From Epithemia pelagica (lineage: Eukaryota > Protista > Bacillariophyta): a DNA stretch of 64,000 bases. This document shows, in pieces, positions 1,102 through 24,745 of the stretch. The position numbers were made by a program, and so were the translations under genes. Below the pieces are notes generated by a model. The model saw nothing but the letters and a program-made list of their open reading frames with translations. It searched no databases and was not told the origin of the DNA. The stretch covers positions 186,001-250,000 of the forward strand of contig OX337231.1 of the NCBI GenBank assembly GCA_946965045.2, read 5' to 3'. Each line of letters begins with the position of its first letter. Position 1 is the first letter of the stretch.

Positions 1102-4100
1102 CTATGACGGATTGCTCGTAAACGGAGGTTGGAGCGTGTTGGGGAGTCCATAGTCTTGCAAAAGGTCGGTGTGTGTTTCGTACAAGACTTGGACCTTGCG
1201 AGTGGCCCCCCATTCCGCATAGTACTTCATGGCTTCGTTCATAAAAAAGGACGCATCGGAAAGGGCATGGACGGATCGCAAGAAGGTGGCATAACGTTCA
1301 TTGGCGAGGCCGGCATCTTGCAGAAATCCGCCCCGAACCGACGCGGCAATGGCCTGTTTGTACGCCTGTTTCGCTTGCTTGTCATTCCGTCTCAAAGCCG
1401 CTTCTTCTGCATCCAACAGAAACAGTTCGTGAACCAAGTTCAAAGCTCCAGACCTGACCCATTGTGCGATGCGGGAACGAGCCTTGCGAGCGGCGTTTCT
1501 GTACTTGGCTTGACCAGTTTCTGCGGCACGGACATACAGACAGAGCGCCCGCGAAAAGGGTTCAAAACCATAATAGGCCGCGCCTGACCATGTCTTATAG
1601 AAAACATCGCCCATCTCCAAGGCTATTTCAGCGCCCTTCTCGTACTCGGCAAAGTAGGCACACAAGTTGCAAATGTGATGACGGCCAACCGTATTGAAAA
1701 TAAAGGGATGTCGTTCAATGTCAATTCCGTGCATAGCCGTGCCCGTTAATCCTGTTGTTTGAGGATTATAGGGAGCACCCATCAAATTTAACACCTTTTG
1801 CCACAGCAGGCGCAATCCCAAAACATAGGTGTGAAGTTGAAGCTTCTCCAGTTGAGGGATATAGTTCCGCAAATCTTGTTCCAAACCAACCAATTTGTTC
1901 CCCCCTGAAAAGAATTCGCAAATCAAAAAGAACAAAATCGCCATGCCGACAGCTCCGATGTTCCCAGATAACATTCCAACACGATATGCTTCCAAGTAGT
2001 TCGCACGACAAGTGCGCAATGGCTTTACCCAACCCAAAACAAAGGTATTGATCTTGTGAAGCGTGCTGGATTTGGTGTAGTTAGACCCCAACCGATTTTC
2101 AATACCCAAGGAAATCTCGGCAATTTTAATGGCAGTCCTCCAGTCGCCATATTCATGCATCAACACATTGGCAAAAGATGCAAAGGAAGACGCGGTGTGG
2201 GTGGTCAATCCATAACGCTTGGTCCACCGCACACATTTGCAGCACAACAATATATACAGAGCCTTGTTCTTGGAGCCTAAGCAAAAGGATGCTGCCTTGA
2301 TCATGAAAGCAATGGCCTCACTTTTCATGACGTCTTGAATTATGGGCATGTCTTGAACGTCTTTTGCTACGGGCAAGTAAAATCGTTTTGTTTGTTGCAT
2401 TGACCAGGAGGCCCATAGTTTTTGGCATTTACGCATCCGGGGAAGTGAACAGCCCAGTTGGTCCAAAGTATCCAAACAAATAGACCACAACTCATCATAC
2501 TTTCCGTCACTGTACAACCGTTCGACCACAATGTTGTTCACTCGCATTTTCCCCAGAATGGAGATATGATCTTGTTTTCGAACTTGGTTGCAGTACCAAT
2601 CAGATTTGTCATTATTACCAGCACATTTCTCGACTTCCGCACCAATCGAGTACAATAACAATGTCAAGTACGGATGCTCCTTCCAAGTATCCGTACGGTT
2701 CAAACTCATGATCCCCTTCTCAACATAATGCACCGCACTGTGAAAGGCCGACAACTCGCGGGCTTTTTCGGCCGCCGATGCATTTAACTCGGCCATTTCC
2801 ATACCTTCGTACATCCCATTATTCAGCAAATCGGCAACCACAAACAGCATACTCTCCAAATCTTCGTCAGGAAGATTCTCGTACAAGCATCTACCAACAT
2901 CACTTCGGAATCCACGGTATTCGTCGTCAGGCATGAGCAACATGGCAGTTTCTTGGACCTTGTCGTGAATGAAGCGATACGATGAATCTCCAACACCTTC
3001 AACCAGCATCTCACGAAGGGCAACTTCTAGAAGATCTTCCACACTCTCGGATGTACCTTCGTATTTTTCTCCGAGATGGCCCCATAACAGCTCCACTGTT
3101 GTTATATCAAATGTGCTTCCCAAACAGGCTGCAACAGAAAGAAACAGAACCATGCCATCGGGGTACTTATCAATTTTGACCTTGATCATGCTAACAACAT
3201 TGAAAGTGGCTGCAGTTTCTTGTTCAACCTTTTCTTCGCTCCACGTCCATTGAAAGTTCCCTATGTTAAACTCCAAAATGTTCATCTCATGTAACAGAAT
3301 CAGAAACTCTTTGATAAAGAAGACATTCCCCAAAGTCCTCTTGTAGCAAATGTTTGCCAATCCTTGTGCTTTTTCCGACGAGACCGAAAGTAACTCGACA
3401 ATAAGTTCTGTTACTGCAGGCAATGGAAGATTCCCCACCGATAACTCGGTCAGGTTGTACTCCTTGGTATTACCTGTGGTACCACTGTTGTTGCTGCTCG
3501 AAGAAAATTCGTCTGGTGTCGAGTGTACGTTGGCAGCTTCAATACGAAGCGTTTGTATAGTTTGCGTTAGAGGATGGATAGCATCCACTTCATCCGAACG
3601 GAAACACCCAATTAACATGAGATTGGGAATAGTTTTATCACCGGCAATTGCTTTTATCATATCCAAAGAGGACTGATCGGCCCATTGCAAATCATCAAGT
3701 ACAATGACCACAGGTCCCAATCGAGCAGCAAAAATTTGGAGAAATGTTCTGACGGCATACTGTACCAATTGTTTCAGTTGACTGGCGTCAATTTCAAGTC
3801 GTTTCGGGGGAAACGTGTTCGTCGGCAACGGACTCCCATGTGAATAGCTCCACGAGCTGCTGCTATCGTCGACAGCAGCGCGCAGATGCCTTTGAAAGTT
3901 ACCGACCCGCTGTTGTACGATTTGCTTTATACTGCTCCGACGCGGTTGCCCTCGACGAGTGGTTCGTCTTGGTGACAAACCGTCATTGGTGTCACTCATT
4001 CGTCCTGCTCTTTTACTGCTGGCAGCTTTTGTTTTTGGGTCATTTCGGAACGATAGTTCAGCAGGGACAAAGGTTCGACTGGGTCTTCGCCGCTGCCCCA

Positions 4101-6630
4101 TGTCATCTTCTGCACGATCCCGATCCATGCGAGCTGCTGAAGGAACAACGGGAAGACTAGCCCTTCGTGCAGAGCCTTGATTTGAACTCGGGGTCGAATC
4201 AGACCGAGTTATAATTTGACTATTTCGACGAGCAGGTCGAGACACCGAGTCGGGTTGTGCTTGTACTGGCGTCTGGGACGATTTTTGATGTGAAGATTGA
4301 ACCCATTCCGACGACGATCGGGTAAACAATTGAGTGCGTCGATGACGCCCTACCTTTGTTGATGTCTCCGTAATGGGACTTGATTGGTTTGGTTGTCGAT
4401 GCAACTGTTGCTGTGATTGGGTTGGATGATCCGAGGAATCCATGGTTGTGGTTGTGGAAGGCAATTTGTGGAACAAATGACGACTCATGAGCCGTTTGAT
4501 TTCTCGAAAACCGTGGTTGGCCGGTGGAGTTGCGGAGGGACCTTGTTTACTGGCGCTCGACGAGTCACCGTCCGATCGTGGTTCTTTCTCGGGTAACTTT
4601 GTTCCTTCACTCTTGGGTGGTGTCGTTTCCATAATTGTACCCGTCAACTGATCCGAACACGATGGATTGGCTAGTACCACATGAAGTAAAGGAATGATAT
4701 GTTCCAGTACATCTAACAGAGGTTTGTCCAAACACGAAACAAGTTCAGTTCGTATCGATCTCACCATTGCTTCCGCGGCCGCAGCAGATGCCGTAGGATT
4801 TTTGTGTTTTCCCCATCTCCTGGTACCACTCGCTCCGGAGGTGAGTGATGGCTGTGTGGAGCTCGTTGGCAATGACGGTGTTTGACGAAAATACAAAATT
4901 TCGCGACACAGTTCATTGCACGCCAATCCAATACCGGACAACGGTTGTTCCTTGAGCTGAATATCATATTTCCCTCGCACCAAGATTCCCCCCATACGAT
5001 GAACGACTGTTTCCTTGAGAGTGTTGGTCAAACTTGATTTTCCCGTTCCCGAAGGACCCCCAATCAACACCACTTCCTTGCGTTGCGAGGTCAATACTGG
5101 ATACGGATTGAAGCCGGATGATACAGAAGCTACATTGACACTCATACCACCTTGACTCGAGGTACTGCTTCGTAGACTGCTGCGATTCGGACTTGCCACA
5201 GACGACGACGAGGATGACGACTCTTTCGTGTTGTGCGGTGGATCCACCAGGGCACGTCCAACGAGCCGATGCAAACAGTTTTGCAAAACTTGTGTTTCGG
5301 CATGGCGTCCCACCAATCCTAGTTTTTCAAATTTGAGTTTGTTAATCGAGGTAAAGGCGGAAGCCAACTTGGATTGAGCTTGCAACTCGAGACTCGATCG
5401 AACCAAGGTCACTTCGGGAGACATTCGACTGGCACTACCCATACTCGATTGGCTTGTAAGCGGGCCGTGTGTCGGAAATGGCAAACTATGATGAGTGGCA
5501 TTCCAACTGGACCGTGTCAAGGACGATGTGACGCTGCTCGGTGGTACCAGGACCATCATACCAGGGGAAGATGCCGATCGGCGCCCAAACGACGATCTCA
5601 GATCCGAAGAATCTTGAATATGTTGATGTTGGTTCTCTTGCACAAGCAAATGACTTTGACGACGAGACAATTGCCGTGGGGCAGGCCACAACATTAACGA
5701 GCGCGGTGGACCTCCAGTTTCGTCGTCTTGGCCTTCATCGTCTTGTTCATTGCCGAGAGCTGGTTCATCCCGAACCAAGTCAGGGTGACCTTGTCGATCC
5801 TCCTTTGCAGCACTGACAGGAACTTGAACTTGCCCTGATTCATCGGCACTCGCATCTTTGGGTTCGTTCGCATCATCTGGTTGCGAGTCTTGTTGTAAAG
5901 ATGAGTTGGAATGCCGCAACAAGGACCTTCTTCGGATGGTGACAGATGCCAAGGAGAGACTACTGCTACTTTCAACCACCATCGTCGATGCAACAGCAGG
6001 AGCACTATCCATCTCCGTGTTAGATGTCGCCGTTGTGTCGTTGGCCACAATAATGCGACGTGTCGTTTCTGCTGGTCCTTGGATGGATTCATGTCCCTGC
6101 TGATTCCCTTGTTCTTTGCTATCGTTTTGTTCATCCTGTGGACAATTTTCTCCTCCGTGTTCGTCCTCATGTTGCTCTTGTTCCTGACCTGTAGCACTGC
6201 GGAGAGGAAGTATTGCGTCATTCGTTTCACCCCCCTCGCTGTTTTGATGATCATGAGGAGTAGAGGGAGGTTGTATCTCGGAATCGCCCGCTGGTAGGGA
6301 CGTCATGACAGTGGAAACATCACTCTCTGTGGGCCCTTTTCTCCATACTGGTGCTTCTGCTTGCGACGGGTGCTCAAACACAATTTCTTCCTCAACTGGT
6401 TGGTTATTAGTGACAACCTGAAGTATTGGAAAGACAGCCTCATTGTCGTCGTCTTGTTGATTCTGTATCGGATCCATGCTGGGTTCGTCCATCTTTGATG
6501 AAGGACGGTCCTCAACGAGTCCTTCATTGTGTGCTGTCACGAAATCGGCAGAATCGCTCGTGTCTGAGATTTGCCCTGGACTTGATGATGATTGCGCATC
6601 CTCTTCTTTTTCCTCCTCCTCATGGTTCAT
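1102..6630 (-). CDS. STAND/AAA_16-type NTPase with long disordered N-terminus and C-terminal TPR-like helical domain (copy 1, 1842 aa)
   Basis: Single ORF with ATG at 6630. Pre-Walker motif LVGRHAE, Walker A GPSGTGKS, Walker B IVLDDLQWAD, LIGCFRSDEV, GNVFF, YRFIHDKVQE and C-terminal GGFLQDAGLANERYA...YAEWGATRKV. Confidence 0.9.
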   Translation of the reverse strand: MNHEEEEKEEDAQSSSSPGQISDTSDSADFVTAHNEGLVEDRPSSKMDEPSMDPIQNQQDDDNEAVFPILQVVTNNQPVEEEIVFEHPSQAEAPVWRKGPTESDVSTVMTSLPAGDSEIQPPSTPHDHQNSEGGETNDAILPLRSATGQEQEQHEDEHGGENCPQDEQNDSKEQGNQQGHESIQGPAETTRRIIVANDTTATSNTEMDSAPAVASTMVVESSSSLSLASVTIRRRSLLRHSNSSLQQDSQPDDANEPKDASADESGQVQVPVSAAKEDRQGHPDLVRDEPALGNEQDDEGQDDETGGPPRSLMLWPAPRQLSRRQSHLLVQENQHQHIQDSSDLRSSFGRRSASSPGMMVLVPPSSVTSSLTRSSWNATHHSLPFPTHGPLTSQSSMGSASRMSPEVTLVRSSLELQAQSKLASAFTSINKLKFEKLGLVGRHAETQVLQNCLHRLVGRALVDPPHNTKESSSSSSSVASPNRSSLRSSTSSQGGMSVNVASVSSGFNPYPVLTSQRKEVVLIGGPSGTGKSSLTNTLKETVVHRMGGILVRGKYDIQLKEQPLSGIGLACNELCREILYFRQTPSLPTSSTQPSLTSGASGTRRWGKHKNPTASAAAAEAMVRSIRTELVSCLDKPLLDVLEHIIPLLHVVLANPSCSDQLTGTIMETTPPKSEGTKLPEKEPRSDGDSSSASKQGPSATPPANHGFREIKRLMSRHLFHKLPSTTTTMDSSDHPTQSQQQLHRQPNQSSPITETSTKVGRHRRTQLFTRSSSEWVQSSHQKSSQTPVQAQPDSVSRPARRNSQIITRSDSTPSSNQGSARRASLPVVPSAARMDRDRAEDDMGQRRRPSRTFVPAELSFRNDPKTKAASSKRAGRMSDTNDGLSPRRTTRRGQPRRSSIKQIVQQRVGNFQRHLRAAVDDSSSSWSYSHGSPLPTNTFPPKRLEIDASQLKQLVQYAVRTFLQIFAARLGPVVIVLDDLQWADQSSLDMIKAIAGDKTIPNLMLIGCFRSDEVDAIHPLTQTIQTLRIEAANVHSTPDEFSSSSNNSGTTGNTKEYNLTELSVGNLPLPAVTELIVELLSVSSEKAQGLANICYKRTLGNVFFIKEFLILLHEMNILEFNIGNFQWTWSEEKVEQETAATFNVVSMIKVKIDKYPDGMVLFLSVAACLGSTFDITTVELLWGHLGEKYEGTSESVEDLLEVALREMLVEGVGDSSYRFIHDKVQETAMLLMPDDEYRGFRSDVGRCLYENLPDEDLESMLFVVADLLNNGMYEGMEMAELNASAAEKARELSAFHSAVHYVEKGIMSLNRTDTWKEHPYLTLLLYSIGAEVEKCAGNNDKSDWYCNQVRKQDHISILGKMRVNNIVVERLYSDGKYDELWSICLDTLDQLGCSLPRMRKCQKLWASWSMQQTKRFYLPVAKDVQDMPIIQDVMKSEAIAFMIKAASFCLGSKNKALYILLCCKCVRWTKRYGLTTHTASSFASFANVLMHEYGDWRTAIKIAEISLGIENRLGSNYTKSSTLHKINTFVLGWVKPLRTCRANYLEAYRVGMLSGNIGAVGMAILFFLICEFFSGGNKLVGLEQDLRNYIPQLEKLQLHTYVLGLRLLWQKVLNLMGAPYNPQTTGLTGTAMHGIDIERHPFIFNTVGRHHICNLCAYFAEYEKGAEIALEMGDVFYKTWSGAAYYGFEPFSRALCLYVRAAETGQAKYRNAARKARSRIAQWVRSGALNLVHELFLLDAEEAALRRNDKQAKQAYKQAIAASVRGGFLQDAGLANERYATFLRSVHALSDASFFMNEAMKYYAEWGATRKVQVLYETHTDLLQDYGLPNTLQPPFTSNPS

Positions 6631-7219
6631 TCTTCTTCCTGTTTTAAACTGGATTTGACGTTGGGGAAACGAACTTCATTCCCAGGCAACTAAAACTATC
6701 CTCGAGGAGCAATACAGACCAATCAATCACCTCCAATGAGGCAAACAACAATGGTTTCTCTCCTTGTTCCAAGGTCCAATTGATGACAAGAAAGGTTCAT
6801 CCACACAATTACTTGCAAAAGGATTGCAATCCAATCTGATTTCTCATGCAACCAAACAGAAGTCAATAATCCGTACAGATTGAAGAAAGGATTGTGAAGG
6901 ACCCCCGAATGCCGAAATCTCTGTCGATCCAGAGCAATCCGGAATCCAAGATTTGCAAAAGTGCGTCTGCCAGCTTTCAATCGTCGTCAGGGCCAATCAT
7001 TCAACCGAAACGACGACAACGACGAGAACCAAGTCTCTTTTCTCACACAGAGAAACAGGTAGGGATTCTAAGTAATCAAAAGAAGCAACCAAAACCAACA
7101 GAAGTTGCAATCTTTTGTTGCTTCTCTTCCTGTTGGTGGCTTCGCGTTGTGCTCGACTGATGATGAAAATGGGAAGAGCTCTTTCGTTTGTCGGTGCGCA
7201 ACGGTTCGTGTGCCTGCGT

Positions 7220-7281
7220 TGTGTGCGTCCCGCTGCGTCGCCTTGATCGTTGTGTGCGTCCCGCTGCGTCGCCTTGATCGT
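7220..7281. repeat. Perfect 31-nt tandem duplication
   Basis: tgtgtgcgtcccgctgcgtcgccttgatcgt at 7220-7250 and 7251-7281, upstream of STAND copy 1. Confidence 0.95.
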
Positions 7282-7784
7282 ACGCCGCACGGACGACTTT
7301 ACTTTACACTTCTCTGTAGTACTTTCTAGCAATAGAGTGAGTATTTCTCCGGCCAATCTGCACAGTCAATGTGTTGGGTCTATCGCAACCGATACGAAGG
7401 CAATATTCAGCTCCTGATTCTCCGAAATCTCCGAACCTTTTCAAACACGACCAAGATCAACACATAACAACAAAATCGGGATTACTTATAGGACAAGATA
7501 TGTCACGGAATTCTGTTGGGTAGATGTAGCTCATCTCACGACTGGAAACGAGTACTCCTAGCAGCATACTCCAAAACTAGGCCATTGAATAACTAGGGTT
7601 CATAGGTTTGCGATCTAGAGATGTGTGCAAAATTTCGACCACTTTTCAACCAAAGCAAAAAACACAAGGAATACAAAAAAACAACTTCTTTTACGTACAG
7701 GAAAGTACAACAACAAATCAGCATTCTTTTGGGCAAAAGCGAAATACAGGAGTTTTCTCGCGTGCGAGGAATCTCGGTTGGTGT

Positions 7785-10700
7785 TTATTCCAAGGCAATG
7801 CTCAACAATCGGTCATGCGTTTGATGGAGTTGCTCCACCTTGCGCATGGCTCCCCATTCGGAAAAATTTTGAATCGCATCCTTGACATGAAAAGCCGCAA
7901 AGGTCAACATGTCCAAGCGAATCAAATACAGGGCATACCGTTCATTGGCAATCCCAGCATCTTGCAAAAAGCCACCTCGAACCGATGCCGAAATGGCCAG
8001 TTTGTAGGCTTTGTGGGCCGCCTTTTTCTGCCCCCGTACAACCGCCTCTTCGGCATCCAACAAGAACAACTCGTGAACCAAATTCATGGCGCCCAACTTG
8101 ACCCAGCGAGCCAGTGTTTTGCGGGCCTTGCGGGCAGCCTTGAGGTATTTGGACTGTCTCGTTTCAATCGCCCTTGCATACAGACATAGTGCCCGCGAAA
8201 AGGGCTCAAAGCCAAAATACGAAGCACCGGACCATGTCTTGTAGAACTCATCGCCCATGGCCAGAGCAATTTCCGCACCCTTCTCATACTCCGAAAAATA
8301 GGCACACAGGTTACAAATATGATGGCGCCCCACCGTATTGTAGATAAAGGGATGCCGTTCAATATCGATTCCATGCATGGCGGTGCCCGTCAAAGCAGTG
8401 CTTTGAGGATTGTACGCAACACCAATCAAATTCAACACTTTTTGCCATAACAGCCGCAACCCAAGGACAAAGGTATATAGCTTGAGTTTTTCCATTTGCG
8501 GAATGAAGTTTCGTAGATCTTGCTCGAGACTTTCAAGTTTATGACTCCCAGAATAGAACTCACACATCAAAAAGAACAAAATTGACATTCCCACTCCTCC
8601 AATGTTCCCCGACAACATTCCTTCTCGGTAGGCTTCCAAATAATTGGCTCGACACGTGCGCAAGGGCTTGACCCATCCCAGGACAAAGGAATTGATCTTA
8701 TGGAGAGTACTGGTCTTGGTGTAATTGGACCCCAATCGGTTTTCAATGCTCAAGGAGATCTCGGCAATCTTGATGGCTGTCTTCCAATCGCCATACTCAT
8801 GCATCAAAACATTGGCAAAGGAAGCAAACCCAGAGGCAGTATGGGACGTCAATCCAAAAAGTTTGGTCCACTGCAAACAGCGACAACACAATAGGACATA
8901 CAATGGCTTGTTCTTGGAACCCAAACAAAAAGAGGCAGCCTTGAGCATGAATGCAATTGCCTCGCGCTTGCCGTCATCTTCAATCATTCCCATCGATTCC
9001 ACTTCATCGGCAACCGGTAAGTAGTATCGTTTGGTTTCGTACATGGAAATCGCCGCACTAAACTTCTGGCATCTCAGTCTTCGTGGAAGTATGCATCCCA
9101 ATTGGTCGAGGGTATCGAGGCACACCGGCCACAACTCATCATACATGCCATCGGCGTAGAGACGCTCCACGACAATATTGGTGATCCTCATCTTCCCTAG
9201 AGCCGGTAAACCTTCTTGCTTCCGCACTTCTTTACAATACCATTCTGATTTCTCATGATTGCCCACACATTCTTCTGCTTCAGCTCCAATCGAATACAGC
9301 AACAGGGTCAAGGTCGGATGGTCTTTCCACATGTCGGTGCAATTCAAACTCATAATGCCCTTTTCAACATAATGTACAGCGCTATTAAATGCGGACAACT
9401 CTCGCGCCTTTTCAGCAGCAGATGCGTTCAATTCACCCATTTCCATACCTTCATACAGCCCGTCGTTCAGTAAATCCGCCACCACGAACAACATGTTCTC
9501 CAAATCTTCATCCGTGAGATTTTCGTACAAACACTTGCCAATATCACTCCGAAACTCAGAAAACTCTTCTTGAGGCATGAGCAACATTGCCGTTTCTTGC
9601 ACTTTATCGTGTATGAACCGGTACGATGAATCATCAACAGACTCAATCAGCATTTCATGCAGGGCGACATTTAATAAATCATCCACGTTTTCGGCCGTTC
9701 CTTCGTACTTTTGTTCCAATTGGCCCCACAAGAGTTCGATCGTTGTGATATCAAATGTATTGCCCAAACAGGCAGCAACGGATAGGAACAACACCATACC
9801 ATCGGTATACTTGTCAATCTTCATTTTGATCATGCTCACGACGTTGAAGGTTGCAGCGGTTTCCTTTTCCAATCGCTCTTCATCCCATGTCCACTGGAAA
9901 GATCCAATATTGAACTGTAATATTTCCATTTGCTGGAGTAACATCAAGAACTCTTTGACAAAGAAGATATTTCCCATTGTTCGCTTGAAACAAACAGTTG
10001 CCAAGCTCTTGGCCTTTTCGGGAGAGATTGATAAAAGCTCCACTATTAGATCTGTCACAGCCAAAAGGGAGAGATTGCCCACGCGGATTTCCGTAAAATT
10101 GTATTCTTTTTGGCAGTACCCATTGTCGTCATGATCAACAACACTGGAGCAAGAAGAAGGCGGGGGAGGCATTGCACCGGCCCTCAGCACTTGAATGGTT
10201 TTGGAAAGGTAATGTGTAGTATCCACGGCATCCGACCGGTAACAGCCAATTACCATGAGGTTGGGAATATTCACATCACCGGCCACGGCAGCAAGGATAT
10301 CCAGCGAGGAGGGATCGGCCCATTGTAAATCATCCAATACAATCACCAAAGGTCCCAATCGCGTGGCAAAGATTTTGAAAAAGGTTCGAATCGCGAATTG
10401 GACCAACTGCTTGGATTGACTGGGATCAATGTCCAATCGTCGTCGGGAGATCAAACTGGGACGGGCGAAACTCAACGAACTGCAACTACTGTCGTCGGCA
10501 TAATTTTTAACGGCCGTCGTTCGGACCGCACTGGTGCTGCGACTATACGCACGACTTTTTCTTCCTCCGTGTTTCTTGTACGATGGTACGATCGATGTGG
10601 GGGTCCAATCACTCAGTTTGACATTCATTTCATCCGGTCGACCACCGACAGGGGTCTGGCGCTTTGAAAATTGCATGCTGTGTACAGCATCGCCATCTTC

Positions 10701-13274: not shown

Positions 13275-13860
13275 GGTTTTGTGGCTTGTTTGTTTTACAA
13301 GAATGGCGCGGATGATTCAATACAAAAAATGGTTCTGCTGCTAGTAGTCGTTTGAATCAAGATGGAACCACACCACACGCTCTTTCACGCTACAATCGTT
13401 GTCTTTTTTGCTTTGTTGTTTCTTCCAAAACGGTCCACCGCAGCCTGATGCCATTCACAATGGCACTCGATCGTGGTCAAGAAAGAAGAAAATGATGATG
13501 ACCTTTGTCGTCTCTCTTGCTTGTTGTTTGGTTTGCGTTTGTTTGTTGTTGTTGTCGTTGGTTTCTATTCAGTTTTTTTGCCGGACCACATTGTCTCTCT
13601 TTGTTGGAGGTGTGTGAGTGTTGTTTTTGTGTGTTACCCAAGTTTCAAATCCACCCTAAGTGGAAGCATGCTACACTAATACAACTAATCTTGTACACTA
13701 GTATAGCTCCAATTAACAAAATGGACAATGACTCATGACCGCCCTTCGTGGATTGTATTCCAGTAACGCATGCAATGTTGAGCGACTACTGTTTGTCGTA
13801 CAGTGCAGATTCGTGCATGCCATTCTCTGCCCATACGGGTGTATGGACAGACGGCATGGT

Positions 13861-13936
13861 TCGGATTCGAATCAAGCTTTCCTTGATGGCTTCCTTGATC
13901 GGATTCGAATCAAGCTTTCCTTGATGGCTTCCTTGA
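13861..13936. repeat. Perfect 38-nt tandem duplication
   Basis: tcggattcgaatcaagctttccttgatggcttccttga at 13861-13898 and 13899-13936; contains the palindromes gattcgaatc and aagctt. Confidence 0.95.
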
Positions 13937-14628
13937 AGATGGGAGTAGAATGCGAACCACCTTTAGAGATAGCGGATAGGGTCTTTCTGTAGCGAAATTG
14001 TTGAAGCTCACTCACATGTCCACAAAGCGTGACAACGAGATTCACTATAACACGTAGAGTACATCCAAACTCCATGCCGAACTTGGGGGGCGCCTTACGC
14101 AGGCACGGAGTAATAAACACTTATTACTCCTATTATCGGCATTGGAGTACAAACCGGACGGACAGATGTGGGGGATATTCGTTGGGCTTCTTCCTACCCG
14201 GATGCCGTCGATGTTGTTGGTGGAGCTCGGACAAGATTATAATAGGAATATGAGCCTGGTATGGTGATGGAAAATACTTCTTATTCTATAGTAGATATGT
14301 AAGACTCGTATATTTATTGTCGATATGTGCTTAAACTCGGTTCTGTCCGGTCAATTGTCCATTGAAAAAGATTAATAGTAATCCGTTGGGAGTTTTAATC
14401 ATGGTGCTACCATCTAACGCTTGCTATTTCTGGGGGTATAGGGGCAATATGGCAGTATGACGCATCTGATAAGGCGTCATGCTCAGTCATCTATGCTAGC
14501 TATTACAATGACCAAGTTGATTGACGACACCAAGCTATTCTATGAACAATCGAGCAACAAAGAAATTTCCAACACTATATCCCAACAGCACTACGAATAC
14601 ACGATTGTGGAACACAAATTTGACTACA

Positions 14629-17600
14629 CTAGGTAAATGAATTTGCAGTCTGAATGGTGGACGAGTGGTGGAGCTGTAGCGATTCACTCCGAGACATGTT
14701 GAGTAGTTCGCCATAGTTTCGCTCCAACAACTCCACCTTGCGAGCTGCACCCCAATCCGAAAAATATTGCACCGCCTTTTTCATGTAAAACGCGGCATCA
14801 CTTAGTTTGTCCTGAGATATCAAATATCAAATAGGTGGCATACCGTTCATTCGCAATCCCGGCATCTTGCAAAAAACCACCTCGCACCGAAACAGAAATG
14901 GCCTGGATGTAGGCCTTGCCAATTTGTTTCTTGAGTTGCTTCACAACAGCCTCCTCGGCATCCAAAATCAACAACTCATGCACCAAATTAATCGCTCCCG
15001 AACGAACCCACTTGGCAATCGTAGACCGCGCTTTTCGTGCAGCCTTCAAATAGCGCGACTGTCCCGTTTTGATGGCCGTGGCATACAAACACAAGGCCCG
15101 TGAAAATGGTTCCTTCCCAAAATAGGCGGCACCGGACCAAATACTGTAGAATTCGTCACCAAATGCCATGGCAACATCAGCACCCTTTTCATACTCCGAA
15201 AAGGGTGCACACAAGTTACAAATGTGCAACGAACTGTTGGTCTTGTAGATCACCATGTTCCTCTCCACATTAATTCCATGCATTGCCGTACCAGTCAAGG
15301 TCGTCGTTTGTAGATTATACGGAGCTCCCATCAAATTCAACACCTTTTGCCACAAAAGACGCAGCCCCAGTACATGAGGATGCAATTTGAGCTTTTCCAG
15401 TTGAGAAATGTAGTTGCGCAAGTCTTCATCCAGATCGGGTAGTTTGTGTCCTCCTGAGAAGAATTCACAAATGGAAAAGAACAAAATGGACATGGCAGCT
15501 CCGCCAATATTTCCCGAAAGAATACCGACACGATAGGCCTCCAAATAGTTTGTTCGGCACGTTCGCAGTGGCTTTACCCAACCCAATACGAATGAGCTCA
15601 GCTTTTGCAGTGTGCTTGACTTTGTATAGTTTGAATTCATACGTTTCTCAATCCTCAACGCCAGTTCGGCTATTTTCAGGGCTGTTTTCCAGTCACCATA
15701 CTCGTGCATCAGTACATTCGCAAACGAAGCTAAGCCAGATGCAGTGTAGACTGTCAAACCATACTTCTTGGTCCACCAAACGCATTTGCAACACAACAAC
15801 ACGTAGAGAGGCTTGTTCTTGGAATCCAAACAAAACGAAGCGGCCTTCAGCATAAAGGCAATGGCTTCTCTAATGGCCGCGTCCCGGATCATTGGCATCG
15901 TTTCCACTTCCTCAGCGACAGGAACATACTTTCGTTTTGTTTTTCGAATAGTTATTGCAGCGCTGAACTGCTGCATCGCCTGCCTTTGCGGAAGCTTGCA
16001 TCCTAATTCATTGAGTGTCTTGAGGAAAATAGACCACAACTCTGTGTATTTGCCGTTGCTGTATAACCGCTCGACAATGGTGTTATTCACTCTCATCTTG
16101 TCCAGAACAGCAATACTCTCTTGTCGGTACACTTCTCTACAGTACCAGTCGGACTTTTCGCTGTTTCCGGCGCACTCCTCTGCTTCAGCACCAATGGTGT
16201 ACAAGGAAAGGGTCAACTTTGGGTGATCTTCCCACATCGACGTTCCATTCAGGCACAATATTCCCTGTTCAACATAGTGGATCGAAGTATGAAATGCCGA
16301 CAACTCTCTAGCCTTGTTCGCGGACGCCGCGTTCAACTCCGCCATTTCTTCACCATAGAAAATGCCATTGTTTAACAGATCGGTCACTACAAAAAGCATA
16401 TTTTCCATTTCTTTGGGAGGCAAGTTCTCGTACAGAATCTTTCCAATATCACATTGGAACTCGTTCGATTCTTCGTCCTGGATCAGCATCAGGGCAGTCT
16501 CTTGCACCGTATCGTGAACAAAACGATAGGAAGATTCACCGACAGCTTCAATCAGCAGTTCTTGTTGCGCCACTTCCAAAAGTTCATCTACGCCTTCGGA
16601 AGCACCACTGTACTTTTCCTTGAGATGACCCCACAACAGTTCGAGGGTGGTGCGACTAAAAATGTTCCCCAGACTGGCAGCGACAGAGGAGAAGAACCAT
16701 TCCATCCGGATATTTGTCGATTTTCATTTTGATCATGCTGACCACATTGAAAGTGGCCCCAGTTTCCTTTTCAAGCTTGTCTTCGTCCCAGGTCCACTGA
16801 AGTGTTCCCACATCAAACTCCAATAGAGCCATTTCATGCATAAGCATCAAAAACTCCTTGACAAAAAATACATTGCCCAAGGTCCGTTTGTAACACACAA
16901 TGGCCAGTCCATGAGCTTTTCCTGCAGTGACTGACAGCAACTCGACAATCATTTCTTGAACAGATTCCAAGGACAAGTTTCCGACCTCCAATTCGGTCAG
17001 TGTAAAATCCTTGTTGTGCTGCCTTTCATCGTCCGTGTTGTCTTTTGGTGCTGCTGCAGCTTTCAATCGCGGCAGGACTACTGAAAGTGGATGATCCTCA
17101 TCGTTGATGTACTCCGATCGATAGCAGCCAATGATCAAAAGGTTGGGGATGGCAACGTCCGTTACAACGGCATGGATCATATCCAACGAATTTCGGTCGG
17201 CCCACTGCAAATCATCCAGCAAAAGAACTAGGGGTCCAATGCGAGAGGCGAAAATCCGTAAAAAATTTCGAATCGCAAACTGAAGCAACATTTCACGTTG
17301 ACTGTTGTCGTCATCTAACCAATTGTGACTGTGACTCTGTGGTTCATCGACGAGCAAATTCGGAACTTCTGGGAGGCTGTTTGTATTATTGGCGGTAAAC
17401 CGAACAATACTTCGACGAAGTCGTCTCTTGGGGACAGTGAGTGGCGAAAAATTAGTATCATCTGTCGTGGATCGTCCTCCTTGAACGCTACTCCTTCGCA
17501 AATCTCGTCGTGCAGGTGCCGTTTGCGAAATGGAGGACCGCTTGGTGATGCGATTCGTCCGGCGATGAGCACCATCGTCATCTACGGAGGATGTCGTAGT

Positions 17601-18944
17601 ATTTCCCGAAGTGATCTTCGAATCTAAAATGACGTAGAGCAATGGCACTAAGTTGTCCAGCACATCCAACAAAGGTTTGTCAATGCTCAACAAGAGTTCT
17701 TGACGAATGGCAAGCAGTTCTTGCTCGTGTTGTTCTCGAGTCACTGTGTTGCGGTTGTACAAAACGTGTCGACACAACTCATTCAGAGCAACTCCGATAC
17801 CAGCCAAGGGCTTTTGATCCTTGATTTTAAGATCGTGCTTGCCCGTGACAAATACACCACCTCCACTCAAGACAACGGCTGACTGTCTTGCTTGCTCTTT
17901 CTGCGTCCATCCCTGTCGTCTCGAGGGATCTTTCAGAGCGGTGGCCAAGGCAGTTTTCCCAGCTCCTGACTCCACACTTAACAATACCAGTTCTCTTTGT
18001 GGCGGTGCAGAACGTTCGGTAGAGGAGGAAGACCGGTCCGTGTGTCCTGAAAGATCGTCCCCATTCAAAGCACTTGTATCACTGCGGCTGACTCGCTGTA
18101 AGCATTGCAAAAGAATGTTTGTCTCTTCCCTTCTTCCAATCAGACCCAACGACTCAAATTTGAGACGATTCATGGAACTCAACGCGGAAGCAAGTTTGCT
18201 TCGTTTTTGTGTTTCCAAACTGGAACGAATCAGGGTAACTTCTGGAACAATGAGACGAGACCTGGACCTTGATACAGAGGCAGGGGATGGGGAAGAGGTA
18301 GACGCCGATGAAAACTCTGCACCTGTATAGTAACTTCCGAGGGTATTGTAGCTGCTTATGGACGACCGAACACTGTTTCGAAACGAACGTCGTTGTCTCC
18401 ATGTCAGAGAATCATTCCGTGTCGTTGCAGTGGTCAAGCCTTGAATATTCGAATGTGCTCCAATGTCATCAAGACTCAGCCTTGGCTTCGAATACCTTCG
18501 TTGCAAAGGAGACGGGGGACCTGCGGATGTGCGTGGCAAATCACCCATGGAAGCGGACAGGGGTATCTTGTGTTCCTCTTGCTGCTCTGCATGCCTTGTA
18601 TCCATTGCCACGTCCTCTTGCTGTGGAATCGAAATGTTTATACTTTCTCGGCTGCTATTATTTTCCACATTTCGTAGCAACAAGGATCGAGTTCGAAACG
18701 ATAAACTGCGTTGAGGATCATCGTCCATTGCCAGGGAAGGACGATGGCCATTAATGTTTGGCCGTGTCAGAGTTATTTCCTTGCCATCGCCCTTGTTGGC
18801 TTCCTCTGCTTCTGTCTTGTTCCTGTCATTCTTTTCTACTTCTTCTTCTTCCAGGTTGCTACTTTCGTAGTTGTCATTGCTCAAAGTGCTTGGTTGTTGT
18901 TCTATGGTTTCTATTGTCGCACTAGTGGCTCTTGTGACATGCAT
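14629..18944 (-). pseudogene. STAND NTPase copy 3, broken by two frameshifts and with a mutated Walker A
   Basis: Three ORF pieces (18944-16656, 16705-14798, 14823-14629) together match copy 4. A 2-nt deletion lies near 16685 (GMVLLL-SVAASLG), a 7-nt duplication tatcaaa at 14818-14831, and Walker A reads VESGAGKT (first Gly to Val, 17973-17975). Confidence 0.85.
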
Positions 18945-19753
18945 TTGGAACCGAAACACCACTCCTCCGTTCCCAATCGTAAGTGTAAATAGTTACAACA
19001 TCCCCTTGTGCCACAATGGCTTGTCTTGGGCAAGAGGGTCAAAACACATGCGTTGTTCGGGACGAAATAGAAAAGTGGCATACGTTGGAAGGTGTCACAA
19101 CACAGCAGAAAGGAATGAATGATGAGAGCTGTATGAAGGATTCTCTTCCTCTCCCAGTTCTCCTTTTCCAACTGCCACCTACTGTGATTCTGTTGGTTTA
19201 GTCATCAGTTTGGTGGCAAGTTGCAAGAGAGATGCTTCCGATATTGCATCAAGACACACTTCCGTATTGCTGCCATCAAGGAAGTCTTTGGTGGGCGACG
19301 ACTGTGCAACCAATTCGCTCTTTATGTGTCATGGAGCAATGTCTGACACGGAGATGAGTCGGCAACGCATTTCCCCCCACCTGAACTGCAAAGAGAAGGT
19401 ACAACAGTAAGAAAGTCATGACTAAATCCGACATTCTATATGACAGCCACTGGGGAGTGAACTACGAGGCTTTGGCATACAAGAAATAAAGATGATCATA
19501 TGTAAATTAATCATCCGACCGAGCGATCGAAAATCACGACACAGCAGCTCCCCATCTCACAACAAGCCTCCTCCCACGCTACGCACCACCAAAGGCACAT
19601 GGTGGGGTGAGGCAAAAGACTCCGGAGATTCGAAGAAAGAGAAGAAGTCATACCTTAGCAGGTCATAAGTCATAAGTTCTGTGTGCGAAATTGGAACAAC
19701 GAGGAATTTTCAAGTCAACACTAGCGAGGTAAAGGTAACCTAAAGTAGATAGC

Positions 19754-22700
19754 TTACGTGAAGGAAGTGGACACACGAAGGTCGGAGGAGTCTAGTTGCA
19801 ACACCGATTCCGTCATGTTCAGTATTTCACCATATTTCTGCTCCAACAACTCCACCTTGCGAGCCGCACCCCAATCCGTATAATACTGGACCGCCTTTTT
19901 CATGTAAAAACCGGCATCGCCCAACATATCCTGAGACATTAAATAGGTGGCGTACCGTTCATTCGCAATCCCGGCATCTTGCAAAAAACCACCTCGTGCC
20001 GCGGCCGAAATTGCTTGTTTGTATGCTTTGCCAATTTGTTTCTTGAGTTGCTTCACAACAGCCTCCTCGGCATCCAAAATCAACAACTCATGCACCAAAT
20101 TAATTGCTCCCGAACGAACCCACTTGGCAATCGTAGACCGCGCTTTCCGTGCTGCCTTCAAATAACGCGCTTGACCCGTCTTGATGGCCGTTGCATACAA
20201 GCACAAGGCCCGTGAAAATGGTTCCTTCCCAAAATAGGCGGCACCAGACCAAATCTTGTAAAACTCGTCACCAAATGCCATGGCCACATCCGCGCCCTTT
20301 TCATACTCCGAAAAGTAGGCACACAAGTTGCATATGTGCAACGAACTGTTGGTCTTGTAGATTACCATATGTCGTTCTACATCAATTCCATGCATTGCCG
20401 TACCGGTCAAGGTCGTGGTTTGCTGATTGTAGGGTGCACCCATCAAATTCAACACCTTTTGCCACAAGAGACGCAGTCCCAGTACATGAGGATGCAATTT
20501 GAGCTTTTCCAGTTGAGAAATGTAGTTGCGCAAGTCTTCATCCAGATCGGGTAGTTTGTGTCCTCCTGAGAAGAATTCACAAATGGAAAAGAACAAGATG
20601 GACATGGCAGCTCCGCCAATATTTCCCGAAAGAATACCGACACGATAGGCCTCCAAGTAGTTTGTGCGACATGTTCGCAATGGTTTCACCCAACCCAATA
20701 CGAATGAGCTCAGCTTTTGCAAGGTACTTGCTTTGGTAAAGTTGGAGCCTAATCGCTTCTCAATGTTGAGGGCAATTTCACCAATTTTCATGGCCGTTTT
20801 CCAATCACCATATTCGTGCATCAGCACGTTCGCAAACGACGCAAACCCAGAAGCTGTATACGGGGTTAATCCGTACTTTTTGGTCCATCGAACGCATTTA
20901 CAGCACAACAATACGTAGAGGGGCTTGTTCTTGGAATCCAAACAAAACGATGCCGCTTTGAGCATGAAGGCAATCGCTTCACGCTTGGCCGGATCCGTGA
21001 TCATGGACATGTTTTCAACTTCTTCGGCAACCGGCAAGTACTTTCGTTTGGTTTCTCGAATCGTCACAAGGGCGCTGAATTTTTGCATGGTTCGTCTTCG
21101 AGGAAGTGTACAACCCAATTCATCCAATGTATCAAGAAAGATAGACCATAACTCGTCATACTTGCCGTTGCTGTACAATCGTTCCACAATGGTATGGTTT
21201 ACTCGCATTTTGTCCAACACGGGAATAATCTCTTGACGTCGGACTTCTCGGCAGTACCAATCCGACTTTTCACTATTCCCGGCGCATTCCTCGGCTTCCG
21301 CTCCCGTCGTATACAGTGACATGGTTAACTTGGGATGTTCTTCCCACATGTCTGTACGATTCAAACACAAGATACCCTTTTCCACATAGTGAATCGAGGT
21401 ATTGAAGGCCGACAAATCGCGAGCTTTCATTGCGGCTGACGCATTGAGTTCGCCCATTTCCACACCATCGTACATGCCATCGTTCAGCAAATCCGTCACC
21501 ACAAACAACATGTTGTCCAGTTCCTTTTGCGGCAGATTCTCGTACAAGCATTTGCCAATTTCACAACGAAAGTCACTTGATTCGTCGTCCGGCATGAGCA
21601 TCAAGGCCGTTTCTTGGACGGTATCGTGTACAAACCGATACGATGATTCCCCAATGGGTTCAATCAACATCTCGCGCTGAGCCACATCCAACAGCTCATC
21701 CACACCTTCCGAAGTGCCATTGTACTTGTCTTGGAGGTACAACCACAAGAGTTTGAGAGTCGCCGTATGGAAAATATTGCCCAAACTGGCCGCGACTGAC
21801 AAGAGTAGGACCATGCCATCTGGATACTTGTCGATTTTCATTTTGATCATGTTGACCACATTGAAGGTTGCGGCTGTTCCCTTTTCCAGTTTTCCTTCAT
21901 CCCATGACCACTGAAAGCTGCCGACATCAAACACCAATATATCAATTTCGTGCAAGAGCATCAAGAATTCCTTGACAAAAAAGACATTGCCCAAGGTTCG
22001 CTTGTAACACACTTTGGCCAATCCCTCCGCCTTTTCGGGGGTCACCGACAGGAGTTCGACGAGCATTTCATTGACAGATTCTTGTGGCAAATTTCCAATC
22101 TCCAATTCGGTAAAGGTAAAATCACGAGTGGCATGGTTGCTTCGGTTCCCACTCGAGCCGGGCGCCGCTGCGGCTTGATATTCGGGAATGGCCCGTCTCA
22201 GTGGATGAGTGTCGTCCACTTCGTCACTGCGGTAGCATCCGATAATGAGAATATTGGGAATGGCAATATCCGAGACAATGGCCTTGATCATATCCAAAGA
22301 ACTTTGATCGGCCCATTGCAAATCGTCCAACAACATGACAATGGGGCCCAGTCGACCGGCCATGACCCGCAAAAAATTCCGCATGGCAAATTGCAAGAGA
22401 GACTTGGCTTGACTGGCATCAATTTCCACCTTGGGTGTCGATTCGGTAGGATTCTCATGATTGGAATCTTGACTGGTTTCCGATTCCCATACACGGAGGC
22501 CGCCCATTAGTATACCGGCGGGTTGTTGGTCCTCCTCCTCGGCGAGAAAATTTTGTACTTGTGCGGCATCGTGATGAAAGCGTGACACACTGCTCCGCAA
22601 TCGCCGTTTTCGGCCTCCGCCACCACCCACCAGACCAGTGGTCGTACCAACGCCCGTGCCAGTCCCCAGTCCACCTTGTGCGGTAAAGGAGGGTTGTTGT

Positions 22701-24745
22701 TTCATGGCTTTGATACTTCGACGCATGTCTCGTCGTGTCGTTTGCACAAACGACGTTCGTTTGGTACTTTTTCGTGAGACTTCGGATGGTTGGTCTCCTC
22801 CGCCTTCTTCGGGAATGGAGGTATCCCGAATGGTCAAAATCACATACAAGAGAGGAATCAAATGATCCAACAAATTGAGCAGAGGTTTGTCAATGGTCAA
22901 CAAGAGTTCGTGTCGCAACGCAATCAAGTGTTGCAGGCGATCTTCCTTGGAAATGCCCGTGGTGGATCCATACAAGACGTGACGGCACAATTCATTGCAG
23001 GCAATGCCAATGCCAGCCAAGGGTTGATCCTTGACTTTAATGTCATGTTTGCCCGTGACAAAAATACCACTCCCAAACGTTGACGACAATGACGACGACG
23101 ACGAGGATGACACGGAGCCACCGCCACTAGAGGATGGTGGTACATAGGCACCCGCATTGGTGGACGATGACGACGACAAGTGATAACTTGCGGATTGTCG
23201 TTGGGGTTGGGGTCGTCGCAATCGTCGTGTTGGATCCTTGAGGGTGGCGGCCAAACTAGATTTGCCCGCACCCGAAGGACCACTCAACAAGACCAATTCT
23301 CGGGGTGGTGGCGGCGGTGGTGAGGTTGACGACGACGATGATGATGCAGATGGTTTGGTACTGGGATCCCAGGCACTGTTGTGGTTGGAGGATATTGATG
23401 ACGAGGATTGTTGTTGATTCATGCGATGCAAACAGTCCAACAAGACTTGCTTTTCCTGGTTCCGTCCAATCAAGCCCAGGGATTCAAATTTCAATCGATT
23501 CATGGAACTCAAGGCCGAGGCCAACTTTTTCTTTTTTTGCGTTTCCAAACTGGATCGAACCAAGGTGACTTCGGGTACAATCATGCTGGACCGGGGAGAC
23601 GAGGGCAAGGTGGTGGACAATGCCGACATGGAAGACGCATCCCCCGACGAACCCGCGCTGTGTTGACTCGTCAAGGAAGCACCATGTGCCCGATTACTAT
23701 ACAACGATCGTCGATGTCGACGTTGGCGCAAACTGGGAGATTCGTGCAAAAAGTCCATGGACAAGTTGTGGTTGGTGTGGTTGGGCGTATAGAACGAAAT
23801 GGTTTCCGTCAAACCATCGTCGGCACCGTGTTGTTGGGAATCATGACTGCTCCGTCGTCGACGCGATTTGGACAAGCGGCGTTGCGGTGGGGGCAAGACA
23901 CTGTCCGAAACGGACCGACCAGCAGCCGTCGACGATGATGACGACAATTCCGGAGCATGATCTTCAGGTGTCGCATCCACCGCCAAGGTGGCGTCCGACA
24001 TGGAAAAGCGCAAACTACTCGGTTCTTCCAAGGTTTCCATGGTCCCTCGTCGTTGACTTCCATTGGTGGTATTGCTCCGATCCGAACTGCGCATCAACAA
24101 GGATCGTCGTCGAAAGGAACGATTCTCCACCATGAATTCGCTGCTATTGGTCGTCGTAGATGTATCATCCTCCTTTGGATTCGTGTCATTTCTGTTGGAC
24201 GAGGAAGCAGCAGCAGATTCGTCTGGTTTCGATGCGGCACTTGTCGTAGCAGAAGCAGCAGCTACAGGGATTGGAGTGGTATCTTGTGGGGGTGGTATTG
24301 ATTCCACTCTCGTTGTGGATGTTGTGGGTGTGCTTCCTTGTGCGGAGGGGTCTGATGTTGGTAGTGGAGGTGCGTTGGTAGAAGGAGGAGGAGGCACGGC
24401 CGTCGAGGACAAGCCTGGATGCTCAGGGTGGAGGTGCAAAGGGCTCGACGACGACGAATTGGTTGGAGGGTTGTTGTGGTTGTTGTCACCAACATTCTCT
24501 ATTGTTTCCACAGAATCGAACCGAATCAAATCGACCTCTGATGGAGATGGCGTTTCCTCTGGGTCTACCAACACAATGAGATTGTCGTCGTCTGGATCGT
24601 CGTTGTCCTGCTCAGAATGTGGTGCTTGTTCGGGTCGTCGTCGTTGTAATGGCGCATCCTCCTGGTAGTGGTTGCTGTCTCCTTGTTTACTAGGTGCTGC
24701 ATCCACCGAGATGCTATCACGACTCGCTCCTGCATCTGGATCCAT
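19754..24745 (-). CDS. STAND/AAA_16-type NTPase + helical repeats (copy 4, 1663 aa)
   Basis: ATG at 24745. LIGRNQE, Walker A GPSGAGKS, Walker B MLLDDLQWAD, YRFVHDTVQE, GGFLQDAGIANERYA...DWGAARKV. Confidence 0.9.
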   Translation of the reverse strand: MDPDAGASRDSISVDAAPSKQGDSNHYQEDAPLQRRRPEQAPHSEQDNDDPDDDNLIVLVDPEETPSPSEVDLIRFDSVETIENVGDNNHNNPPTNSSSSSPLHLHPEHPGLSSTAVPPPPSTNAPPLPTSDPSAQGSTPTTSTTRVESIPPPQDTTPIPVAAASATTSAASKPDESAAASSSNRNDTNPKEDDTSTTTNSSEFMVENRSFRRRSLLMRSSDRSNTTNGSQRRGTMETLEEPSSLRFSMSDATLAVDATPEDHAPELSSSSSTAAGRSVSDSVLPPPQRRLSKSRRRRSSHDSQQHGADDGLTETISFYTPNHTNHNLSMDFLHESPSLRQRRHRRSLYSNRAHGASLTSQHSAGSSGDASSMSALSTTLPSSPRSSMIVPEVTLVRSSLETQKKKKLASALSSMNRLKFESLGLIGRNQEKQVLLDCLHRMNQQQSSSSISSNHNSAWDPSTKPSASSSSSSTSPPPPPPRELVLLSGPSGAGKSSLAATLKDPTRRLRRPQPQRQSASYHLSSSSSTNAGAYVPPSSSGGGSVSSSSSSSLSSTFGSGIFVTGKHDIKVKDQPLAGIGIACNELCRHVLYGSTTGISKEDRLQHLIALRHELLLTIDKPLLNLLDHLIPLLYVILTIRDTSIPEEGGGDQPSEVSRKSTKRTSFVQTTRRDMRRSIKAMKQQPSFTAQGGLGTGTGVGTTTGLVGGGGGRKRRLRSSVSRFHHDAAQVQNFLAEEEDQQPAGILMGGLRVWESETSQDSNHENPTESTPKVEIDASQAKSLLQFAMRNFLRVMAGRLGPIVMLLDDLQWADQSSLDMIKAIVSDIAIPNILIIGCYRSDEVDDTHPLRRAIPEYQAAAAPGSSGNRSNHATRDFTFTELEIGNLPQESVNEMLVELLSVTPEKAEGLAKVCYKRTLGNVFFVKEFLMLLHEIDILVFDVGSFQWSWDEGKLEKGTAATFNVVNMIKMKIDKYPDGMVLLLSVAASLGNIFHTATLKLLWLYLQDKYNGTSEGVDELLDVAQREMLIEPIGESSYRFVHDTVQETALMLMPDDESSDFRCEIGKCLYENLPQKELDNMLFVVTDLLNDGMYDGVEMGELNASAAMKARDLSAFNTSIHYVEKGILCLNRTDMWEEHPKLTMSLYTTGAEAEECAGNSEKSDWYCREVRRQEIIPVLDKMRVNHTIVERLYSNGKYDELWSIFLDTLDELGCTLPRRRTMQKFSALVTIRETKRKYLPVAEEVENMSMITDPAKREAIAFMLKAASFCLDSKNKPLYVLLCCKCVRWTKKYGLTPYTASGFASFANVLMHEYGDWKTAMKIGEIALNIEKRLGSNFTKASTLQKLSSFVLGWVKPLRTCRTNYLEAYRVGILSGNIGGAAMSILFFSICEFFSGGHKLPDLDEDLRNYISQLEKLKLHPHVLGLRLLWQKVLNLMGAPYNQQTTTLTGTAMHGIDVERHMVIYKTNSSLHICNLCAYFSEYEKGADVAMAFGDEFYKIWSGAAYFGKEPFSRALCLYATAIKTGQARYLKAARKARSTIAKWVRSGAINLVHELLILDAEEAVVKQLKKQIGKAYKQAISAAARGGFLQDAGIANERYATYLMSQDMLGDAGFYMKKAVQYYTDWGAARKVELLEQKYGEILNMTESVLQLDSSDLRVSTSFT

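Follow-up and report, generated by a model that had tools for sequence, protein, structure and literature searches.

A tandem array of AAA_16 STAND-type NTPases lacking a recognisable effector domain in the diatom Epithemia pelagica

Tandem copies of a STAND-type NTPase gene, one of them a pseudogene, raise the question of whether the locus that carries them is an immune receptor cluster or a set of signalling switches. Such an array is present in a 64,000-nucleotide stretch of the diatom Epithemia pelagica (assembly GCA_946965045.2, contig OX337231.1, positions 186,001 to 250,000), hereafter the window, in which the listing of open reading frames (ORFs) revealed four co-oriented minus-strand paralogs, c1 to c4, three of them intact and one (c3) broken (Table 1). 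An original prediction, made from the nucleotide sequence alone, had described four co-oriented paralogs with one dead copy, which the ORF sets and the lesions of c3 confirmed, and the motifs on which it relied (LxGRxxE, Walker A, LDDLQWAD, GFLQDAG and WGAxRKV) were each recovered where it had placed them. Overall protein identity to c1 was 52-53% for both c2 and c4, and the cores of the three intact copies were 60-67% identical. The intergenic spacers within the array measured 0.8-1.5 kb, and a spacer-against-spacer comparison intended to date the duplications found no similarity across the array, hence the duplications are old. On balance we favour a reading of the locus as a lineage-specific tandem array of MalT/PknK-like AAA_16 STANDs without a recognisable effector, which would act as ligand-gated nucleotide switches and are likely subfunctionalised, as opposed to forming a recognition repertoire.

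Table 1. Coordinates of the array, its motifs and domains, and the neighbouring ORFs in the window
Feature	Position in window	Strand	Basis or remark
c1, intact, 1842 aa	1102-6630	-	ORF, AAA_16 match, motifs
c1 motifs, N-terminal half	RRRSLL 5917-5934; LVGRHAE 5296-5316; Walker A 5035-5058	-	
c1 motifs, remainder	Walker B 3682-3708; GNVFF 3316-3330; YRFIHD 2962-2979; WGATRKV 1192-1212	-	
c2, intact, 1829 aa	7785-13274	-	ORF, AAA_16 match, motifs
c2 motifs, N-terminal half	RKRSLL 12930-12947; MIGREWE 11937-11957; Walker A 11484-11507	-	
c2 motifs, remainder	Walker B 10320-10346; GNIFF 9960-9974; YRFIHD 9606-9623; WGAMRKV 7836-7856	-	
c3, recently decayed copy	14632-18992	-	broken ORFs
c3 open pieces	16656-18962 and 14798-16705; shifted tail 14632-14826	-	
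Gene-conversion tract in c3, ~0.8 kb	14820-15600	-	85-100% identical to c4 ~19940-20720, elsewhere ~72%
c4, intact, 1663 aa	19754-24745	-	ORF, AAA_16 match, motifs
c4 motifs, N-terminal half	RRRSLL 24095-24112; LIGRNQE 23453-23473; Walker A 23258-23281	-	
c4 motifs, remainder	Walker B 22313-22339; GNVFF 21977-21991; YRFVHD 21623-21640; WGAARKV 19853-19873	-	
c4 nucleotide-binding oligomerisation module (NBD, HD and WHD), aa 415-1064, with two disordered inserts within the NBD	21554-23503	-	model
c4 C-terminal TPR-like superhelix, putative ligand-binding sensor, ~aa 1250-1631	19853-20998	-	structural match
2OG-Fe(II) oxygenase (PF13640) ORF	25857-26792		
Putative rhamnosyltransferase (PF11316) ORF	29406-31637		
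GPN-loop GTPase (ATP_bind_1, E 1e-57) ORF	32162-33145		

Each copy follows one layout, in which a disordered N-terminus of approximately 400 residues is followed by an AAA_16 P-loop domain with disordered inserts, a helical domain (HD) that carries the GNxFF motif, a winged-helix domain (WHD) that carries FxHD, a helical arm and a TPR-like domain. The stop codon lies approximately 30 residues past this last domain, the putative sensor, and the WGAxRKV motif approximately 30-35 residues upstream of the stop. The sole Pfam family above its cut-off was AAA_16 (PF13191; gathering cut-off 32.6 bits), which scored 48.0-72.9 bits in the three intact copies and in the N-terminal piece of c3; in c1 and c2 the inserts divide the match in two. 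Neither NACHT nor NB-ARC was found above the Pfam cut-off in the array proteins; NB-ARC reached 20.1 bits (cut-off 23.5) on the distant relative P0076, and the only NCBIfam match, to TOMM kinase/cyclase fusion proteins across the same core, was weak and below threshold. In c1, c2 and c4, Walker A takes the form GPSGxGKS/T and Walker B the form LDDLQW(AD). Across 66 homologs the glycines and lysine of Walker A, the DD of Walker B, the T.G of the T.GN.FF motif and the F.H of the WHD motif F.HD were invariant, with the N and FF of T.GN.FF and the D of F.HD conserved in at least 90% and the arginine of the adjoining YR nearly invariant. By analogy, F.HD probably corresponds to the winged-helix histidine that is conserved in other STANDs.

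The predicted fold agrees with this family assignment. An AlphaFold model of c4 (residues 475-1663; 69-sequence alignment) had a mean predicted local distance difference test (pLDDT) score of 81, and a Foldseek search with the whole core retrieved the archaeal STAND-TPR protein 6mfv as its top match (E 1.5e-6), followed by Avs3, SAMD9, Apaf-1 and MalT. Model residues 586-1157 were all-helical, with residues 776-1157 matching MalT domain III and the TPR domains of Rap receptors; for the C-terminal stretch of approximately 380 residues, the Z score was 19.3 to MalT domain III (1hz4; 345 of 366 residues) and approximately 21 to the Rap receptors. A second model, confined to the nucleotide-binding oligomerisation module (NOD; c4 residues 415-1064; pLDDT 76, ordered parts >90), superposed on MalT (8bob) across the nucleotide-binding domain (NBD), HD and WHD with a Z score of 14.5 and a root-mean-square deviation (rmsd) of 3.7 over 317 residues. 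Comparable Z scores were obtained with NRC1 (14.6), NRC2 (14.3) and 6mfv (13.9; rmsd 3.9), followed by Avs3 (11.4) and Apaf-1 (11.3), and all three subdomains aligned to MalT, NRC2, 6mfv and Apaf-1 at an rmsd of 3.7-4.4. ORC/Cdc6 proteins gave similar Z scores, but either at an rmsd above 10 or over the NBD and HD only. When relatives with solved structures were sought by sequence, with a single sequence and with a 69-sequence profile, the matches were confined to the P-loop. Pfam family and modelled fold together support the classification of the array proteins as STAND-type NTPases, as had been proposed from their motifs.

The NBD of these proteins is unusually drawn out: Walker A and Walker B are 315-450 residues apart, as compared with approximately 140-160 in compact relatives, with disordered inserts of 45 to approximately 280 residues splitting the NBD between the two motifs (model residues 37-82 and 173-300 in c4). 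Such inserts would be consistent with a structural scaffold that has lost its switch, in which the TPR superhelix and the disordered regions serve as a constitutive interaction platform, for example in the manner of APC or of the TPR subunits of IFT, and the P-loop is a relic. The TPR part of c4 does resemble many scaffold TPR proteins (Z 14-18), and the lack of an effector domain, described below, would also fit. However, the invariant residues of Walker A and Walker B and the WHD histidine, together with the near-invariant YR arginine, hold across the 66 homologs, which include the three intact copies; the NBD segments that flank the inserts were modelled at pLDDT >90, and the ratio of nonsynonymous to synonymous differences (pN/pS) between alleles was 0.03-0.04 over the segment comprising Walker B, HD and WHD. 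Furthermore, it is in the dead copy, c3, that a P-loop glycine has been lost. A scaffold with a relic P-loop is consequently an improbable description of these proteins.

Known STANDs add to a NOD, an arm and a sensor at least one effector domain, placed at either end (PMC4381067). The array proteins match the NOD-arm-sensor part of this scheme and differ from it in that no effector domain was found at either end: scans with Pfam, NCBIfam and PADLOC revealed no effector or death domain (TIR, CARD, HET, patatin, nuclease or other), and the PADLOC anti-phage defence profiles matched the P-loop and nothing further. MalT of Escherichia coli, the archetypal STAND transcription activator, shares the NBD-HD-WHD fold, domain III and the NOD-arm-sensor arrangement (PMC4381067), yet the diatom proteins lack its C-terminal LuxR/GerE DNA-binding effector, in that no GerE/LuxR helix-turn-helix was matched by Pfam at their C-termini, and their sequence similarity to MalT, as to other proteins of solved structure, is limited to the P-loop. 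The PH0952-type archaeal STAND-TPR protein 6mfv has the same layout of a NOD plus a TPR sensor, but is far shorter, has no disordered inserts or tail and shows 14-16% sequence identity. The best structural match of the c4 TPR domain was to the Rap/RRNPP peptide receptors of Firmicutes and phages (Z 19-21 over approximately 340 residues), which suggests a closed superhelix able to hold a small peptide or metabolite; these receptors are 7-9% identical, have no NTPase module, and the resemblance may reflect nothing more than a common TPR superhelix. Plant and animal NLRs, Apaf-1 and bacterial Avs proteins share the NBD-HD-WHD fold and a repeat-type sensor C-terminal to the NOD, whereas the diatom NOD is of the AAA_16 family and not NB-ARC or NACHT, and is accompanied by no effector domain, hypervariable sensor or link to a defence profile.

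The closest relatives of the array fell into two groups in a word-based protein search with the c4 core. The first comprised approximately 20 diatom-type proteins of 29-67% identity, among them proteins of a Bacillariaceae metagenome-assembled genome, Thalassiosira and Seminavis. The second comprised cyanobacterial hybrids of Ser/Thr kinase, AAA_16, GAF, PAS and His kinase domains, which were 25-26% identical over 96-97% of the query (E 1e-83 to 1e-60). Feature and structure searches of the ESM Atlas agreed with this result, in that the commonest eukaryotic taxon was Bacillariophyta; an additional ESM Atlas cluster of 106 proteins of approximately 609 residues, mostly from Bacillariophyta, matched the arm and sensor alone (TM 0.88) and represents either incomplete gene models or stand-alone sensor proteins. 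The diatom family, which is widespread in diatoms, is annotated only as 'predicted ATPase' or 'hypothetical', and no paper on it was found in the literature; the NB-ARC-TPR and NACHT proteins mentioned for T. pseudonana (PMC5599023) belong to other families than the AAA_16 array.

The cyanobacterial hybrids are dual protein kinases of the HstK family (cbSTKIII; PMC2176072), in which a Ser/Thr kinase at the N-terminus and a His kinase at the C-terminus are combined with one GAF domain or more. Their likeness to the diatom proteins spans the whole core of NTPase, HD, WHD, arm and sensor and includes the motifs LxGRxxE, DDLQW, GNPFF, FxHD and a C-terminal WGAxxKV, which supports end-to-end homology of the two cores, with the diatom proteins stopping where GAF begins in the hybrids; the earlier interpretation holds at the level of architecture. 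The diatom proteins are nevertheless eukaryotic nuclear genes that have no N-terminal kinase, GAF, PAS or histidine kinase, and that carry instead the disordered N-terminus and the long NBD inserts. In a tree of the whole core, c1, c2 and c4 formed one clade (support 99) within a diatom clade of 20 sequences (support 100), and the hybrids were the nearest clade outside the diatoms. A NOD tree rooted with distant AAA_16-TPR proteins, and sampled from proteins of at least about 915 residues, placed all diatom-type sequences in a single clade (support 88) that was sister to the bacterial hybrids and not nested within them (joint node support 95). The locus had been portrayed as bacteria-derived with its kinase modules stripped away; given the sister relationship, both the direction of such a transfer and the domain losses are inferred and not read directly from the tree. 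A bacterial origin with later loss of the kinase and histidine-kinase modules is plausible, since several outgroups carry kinases and the eukaryotic distribution is narrow.

Five other diatom loci encoding members of the family were each single copy within 10 kb, and showed no synteny with the window. At the diatom-type family member P0012, the contig (ENA ERZ23498362) carries a separate protein kinase gene of 445 residues, 1 kb downstream on the same strand, which could be either a chance neighbour or a split partner. The presence of a 2OG oxygenase gene upstream of both c4 and P0008 was considered as possible shared synteny and was rejected, as the two genes are unrelated.

An array of proteins that end where their relatives continue could also arise from faulty gene models, either because the ORFs are parts of larger spliced genes with kinase or histidine-kinase exons or because the inserts are introns, and none of the public sequencing runs is recorded as RNA to show transcript structure. 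Six full-length bacterial kinase/AAA_16/GAF/PAS/His-kinase hybrids were used in tblastn searches of the whole 64 kb. The matches, four in number and corresponding to the four cores, spanned hybrid residues from approximately 320 to 1310, a stretch that runs from the NTPase through the helical domain, and no coding sequence for a kinase, GAF, PAS or histidine kinase was found; the kinase modules that had been described as missing are thus found neither in the proteins (Pfam) nor in the surrounding DNA, and the short spacers leave little room for them. The approximately 20 diatom-type homologs likewise carry AAA_16 alone and share the same C-terminal end point. Reading frames remained open across the low-complexity insert of approximately 1 kb in two assemblies that differ by a synonymous divergence (dS) of 0.05-0.09, every indel that distinguishes the alleles of the three intact copies preserved the frame, and pN/pS of the insert between alleles was 0.05 in c2 and 0.16 in c4, hence we regard the long low-complexity stretches as coding sequence and not introns. 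No spliced joints were present on c1 in the contigs of three public runs, none of them recorded as RNA. These observations give indirect support to the description of the genes as intronless, and make it highly improbable that the array is an artefact of its gene models.

One of these runs (X3; window 900-6850) covered c1 with uneven, 3'-heavy depth that fell to zero upstream of position 6472, the annotated ATG being at 6630. The sample that yielded X3 also yielded a DNA-like run, and the longest contig of X3 measures only 10 kb. X3 may be RNA, and if so, c1 is transcribed unspliced, with a start possibly downstream of the first ATG.

The mode of evolution of the array was investigated with a second public assembly (ENA ERZ21939226, contig ctg1223l, loci L001 and L004), the DNA of which is 97-98% identical to the window. 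Alleles were used since the paralogs, at 52-67% protein identity, have saturated synonymous sites; the comparison is between two haplotypes and has no site-wise scope. The array had been proposed to be a diversifying immune or stress sensor cluster. In its full form this reading makes the paralogs an NLR-like set of innate-immune or cell-death sensors for pathogen or stress ligands that evolve by birth and death, in which the disordered N-termini would act as unconventional effectors. The STAND fold common to NLRs, Apaf-1 and Avs, the tandem multiplication to four copies, the lineage specificity of the array relative to the single-copy loci of other diatoms, and the events at c3 detailed below are all in keeping with such a cluster. 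Against it, the same four copies were found in the same order in both assemblies despite their divergence, which together with the single-copy state of the five other loci runs counter to the birth and death that had been envisaged, and the duplications themselves are old, the paralogs having diverged to their present identities with unrelated spacers.

The distribution of variation along the proteins bears directly on the same question. The ratio of nonsynonymous to synonymous substitution (dN/dS) between alleles was 0.34 for c1, 0.12 for c2 and 0.07 for c4, and 0.02-0.12 (as pN/pS) for the sensor, so that this domain-by-domain check, suggested with the original prediction, pointed to purifying selection. 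The sensor was the most conserved region (75% between paralogs, 50% over the diatom clade), and the N-terminus and inserts were the variable ones. This pattern is the opposite of that expected of a diversifying receptor repertoire, in a comparison of two haplotypes that leaves a few selected sites possible. With no match to an effector domain in Pfam and with defence-system profiles matching the P-loop alone, the reading as an NLR-type array retains its STAND fold, but not a NACHT or NB-ARC NOD or a diversifying sensor, and we regard an immune or cell-death sensor cluster as unlikely. A mosaic of synonymous difference (pS) was observed between the alleles of c1, at 0.12 in the N-terminus, 0.07 in the C-terminal domain and 0.00-0.025 across residues 405-1230, and this points to a local sweep or to haplotypes that have recently recombined or undergone conversion.

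The decayed copy carries independent lesions in its two alleles. In the window, c3 has a 2-bp deletion within a CT run near position 16690, a Gly-to-Val substitution of the first P-loop glycine (VESGAGKT, 17952-17975), and 9-bp and 7-bp indels close to its end, whilst the allele in the second assembly has none of these lesions and instead bears a stop codon directly after Walker A. Its decay appears to be recent, as allelic dN/dS is still 0.18. A tract in c3 shows far higher identity to c4 than the remainder of the gene (Table 1), indicating that these neighbouring copies have exchanged sequence by gene conversion. The array also contains a polymorphism: the c3-c2 spacer is 1.5 kb in the window (13275-14797) and approximately 15.3 kb in the second assembly (L001 20491-24977, L004 1-9500), owing to an insertion of approximately 14 kb that includes a Copia-type (RVT_2) retrotransposon ORF of 1875 residues. 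The pseudogene with its two sets of lesions, the conversion tract and the retrotransposon insertion polymorphism are the events referred to above as compatible with an immune receptor locus. In addition, the spacers upstream of c1 and c2 each contain a tandem duplication made up of two perfect copies, of 31 bp (7217-7281) and 38 bp (13861-13936), respectively.

The N-terminal 395-405 residues could not be aligned among the copies, are rich in Ser, Thr, Pro and Arg, and contain 15-19% Ser and 16-24% hydrophobic residues. Their non-alignable, disordered character had been anticipated, and was found to hold apart from one short island: RRRSLL (RKRSLL in c2) was the sole six-residue word common to the N-termini of c1, c2 and c4 when one mismatch was allowed. 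The N-terminus of c3 contains a near match, TRSLLL, and the motif also occurs in the N-termini of the orthologs P0004 and P0014. RRRSLL is a candidate site of phosphorylation by a basophilic kinase, or a candidate docking site.

By analogy with MalT, these proteins most likely function as oligomerising switches that are gated by a ligand and respond to a conserved signal. In this scheme a small molecule or peptide, itself conserved, would occupy the arm and sensor, upon which the module would open, take up ATP in place of ADP and assemble into oligomers. With no effector domain to act, output would be left to the disordered N-termini once these are clustered, or to a partner that the proteins recruit, and may be tuned by phosphorylation at RRRSLL. 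The age of the paralogs and the constraint on each of them make it most likely that they are signalling switches that have subfunctionalised, as opposed to a repertoire for recognition that is diversifying.

Several points weigh against this account of ligand-gated switches. Its ligand, oligomerisation and output route are all drawn by analogy, and an effector-less STAND has no signalling precedent among those tested. Tandem multiplication, a pseudogene and a gene-conversion tract are also typical of immune receptor loci, and a dN/dS computed from two haplotypes is blind to a few positively selected sites. A bolder version holds that in diatoms the NOD-sensor core of the bacterial hybrids became an effector-less STAND that signals through a phospho-regulated disordered N-terminus (RRRSLL) and disordered NBD loops, with the array serving biotic or cell-fate sensing, and thereby constituting an NLR-like system with AAA_16 as a third family of NOD; we consider this doubtful.

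The ORFs upstream of c4 listed in Table 1 belong to ordinary eukaryotic genes and show no evident connection with the array. This flank differs in structure between the assemblies (window 25340-37811 versus L001 279-8929). The block 29342-37811, which comprises the rhamnosyltransferase-like ORF, the GPN-loop GTPase and an ORF of 1193 residues, adjoins c4 in L001 in the opposite orientation and is 79.6% identical, and the segment 25340-29342 has no counterpart in L001. The difference could be due to an inversion or to a paralogous segment.

What is new at this locus is an effector-less eukaryotic AAA_16 STAND, the STAND architecture itself being already known. Tandem copies and a pseudogene are insufficient for such a locus to be called an immune receptor cluster. 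Diatoms are major primary producers whose intracellular signalling and pathogen responses are little known, and this family is a clear example of a STAND sensor core of bacterial type that has no catalytic or effector partner, posing the question of how a STAND switch signals without an effector. Its orthologs across diatoms, the conserved candidate phosphosite and the conserved putative ligand pocket offer tractable targets for that question.

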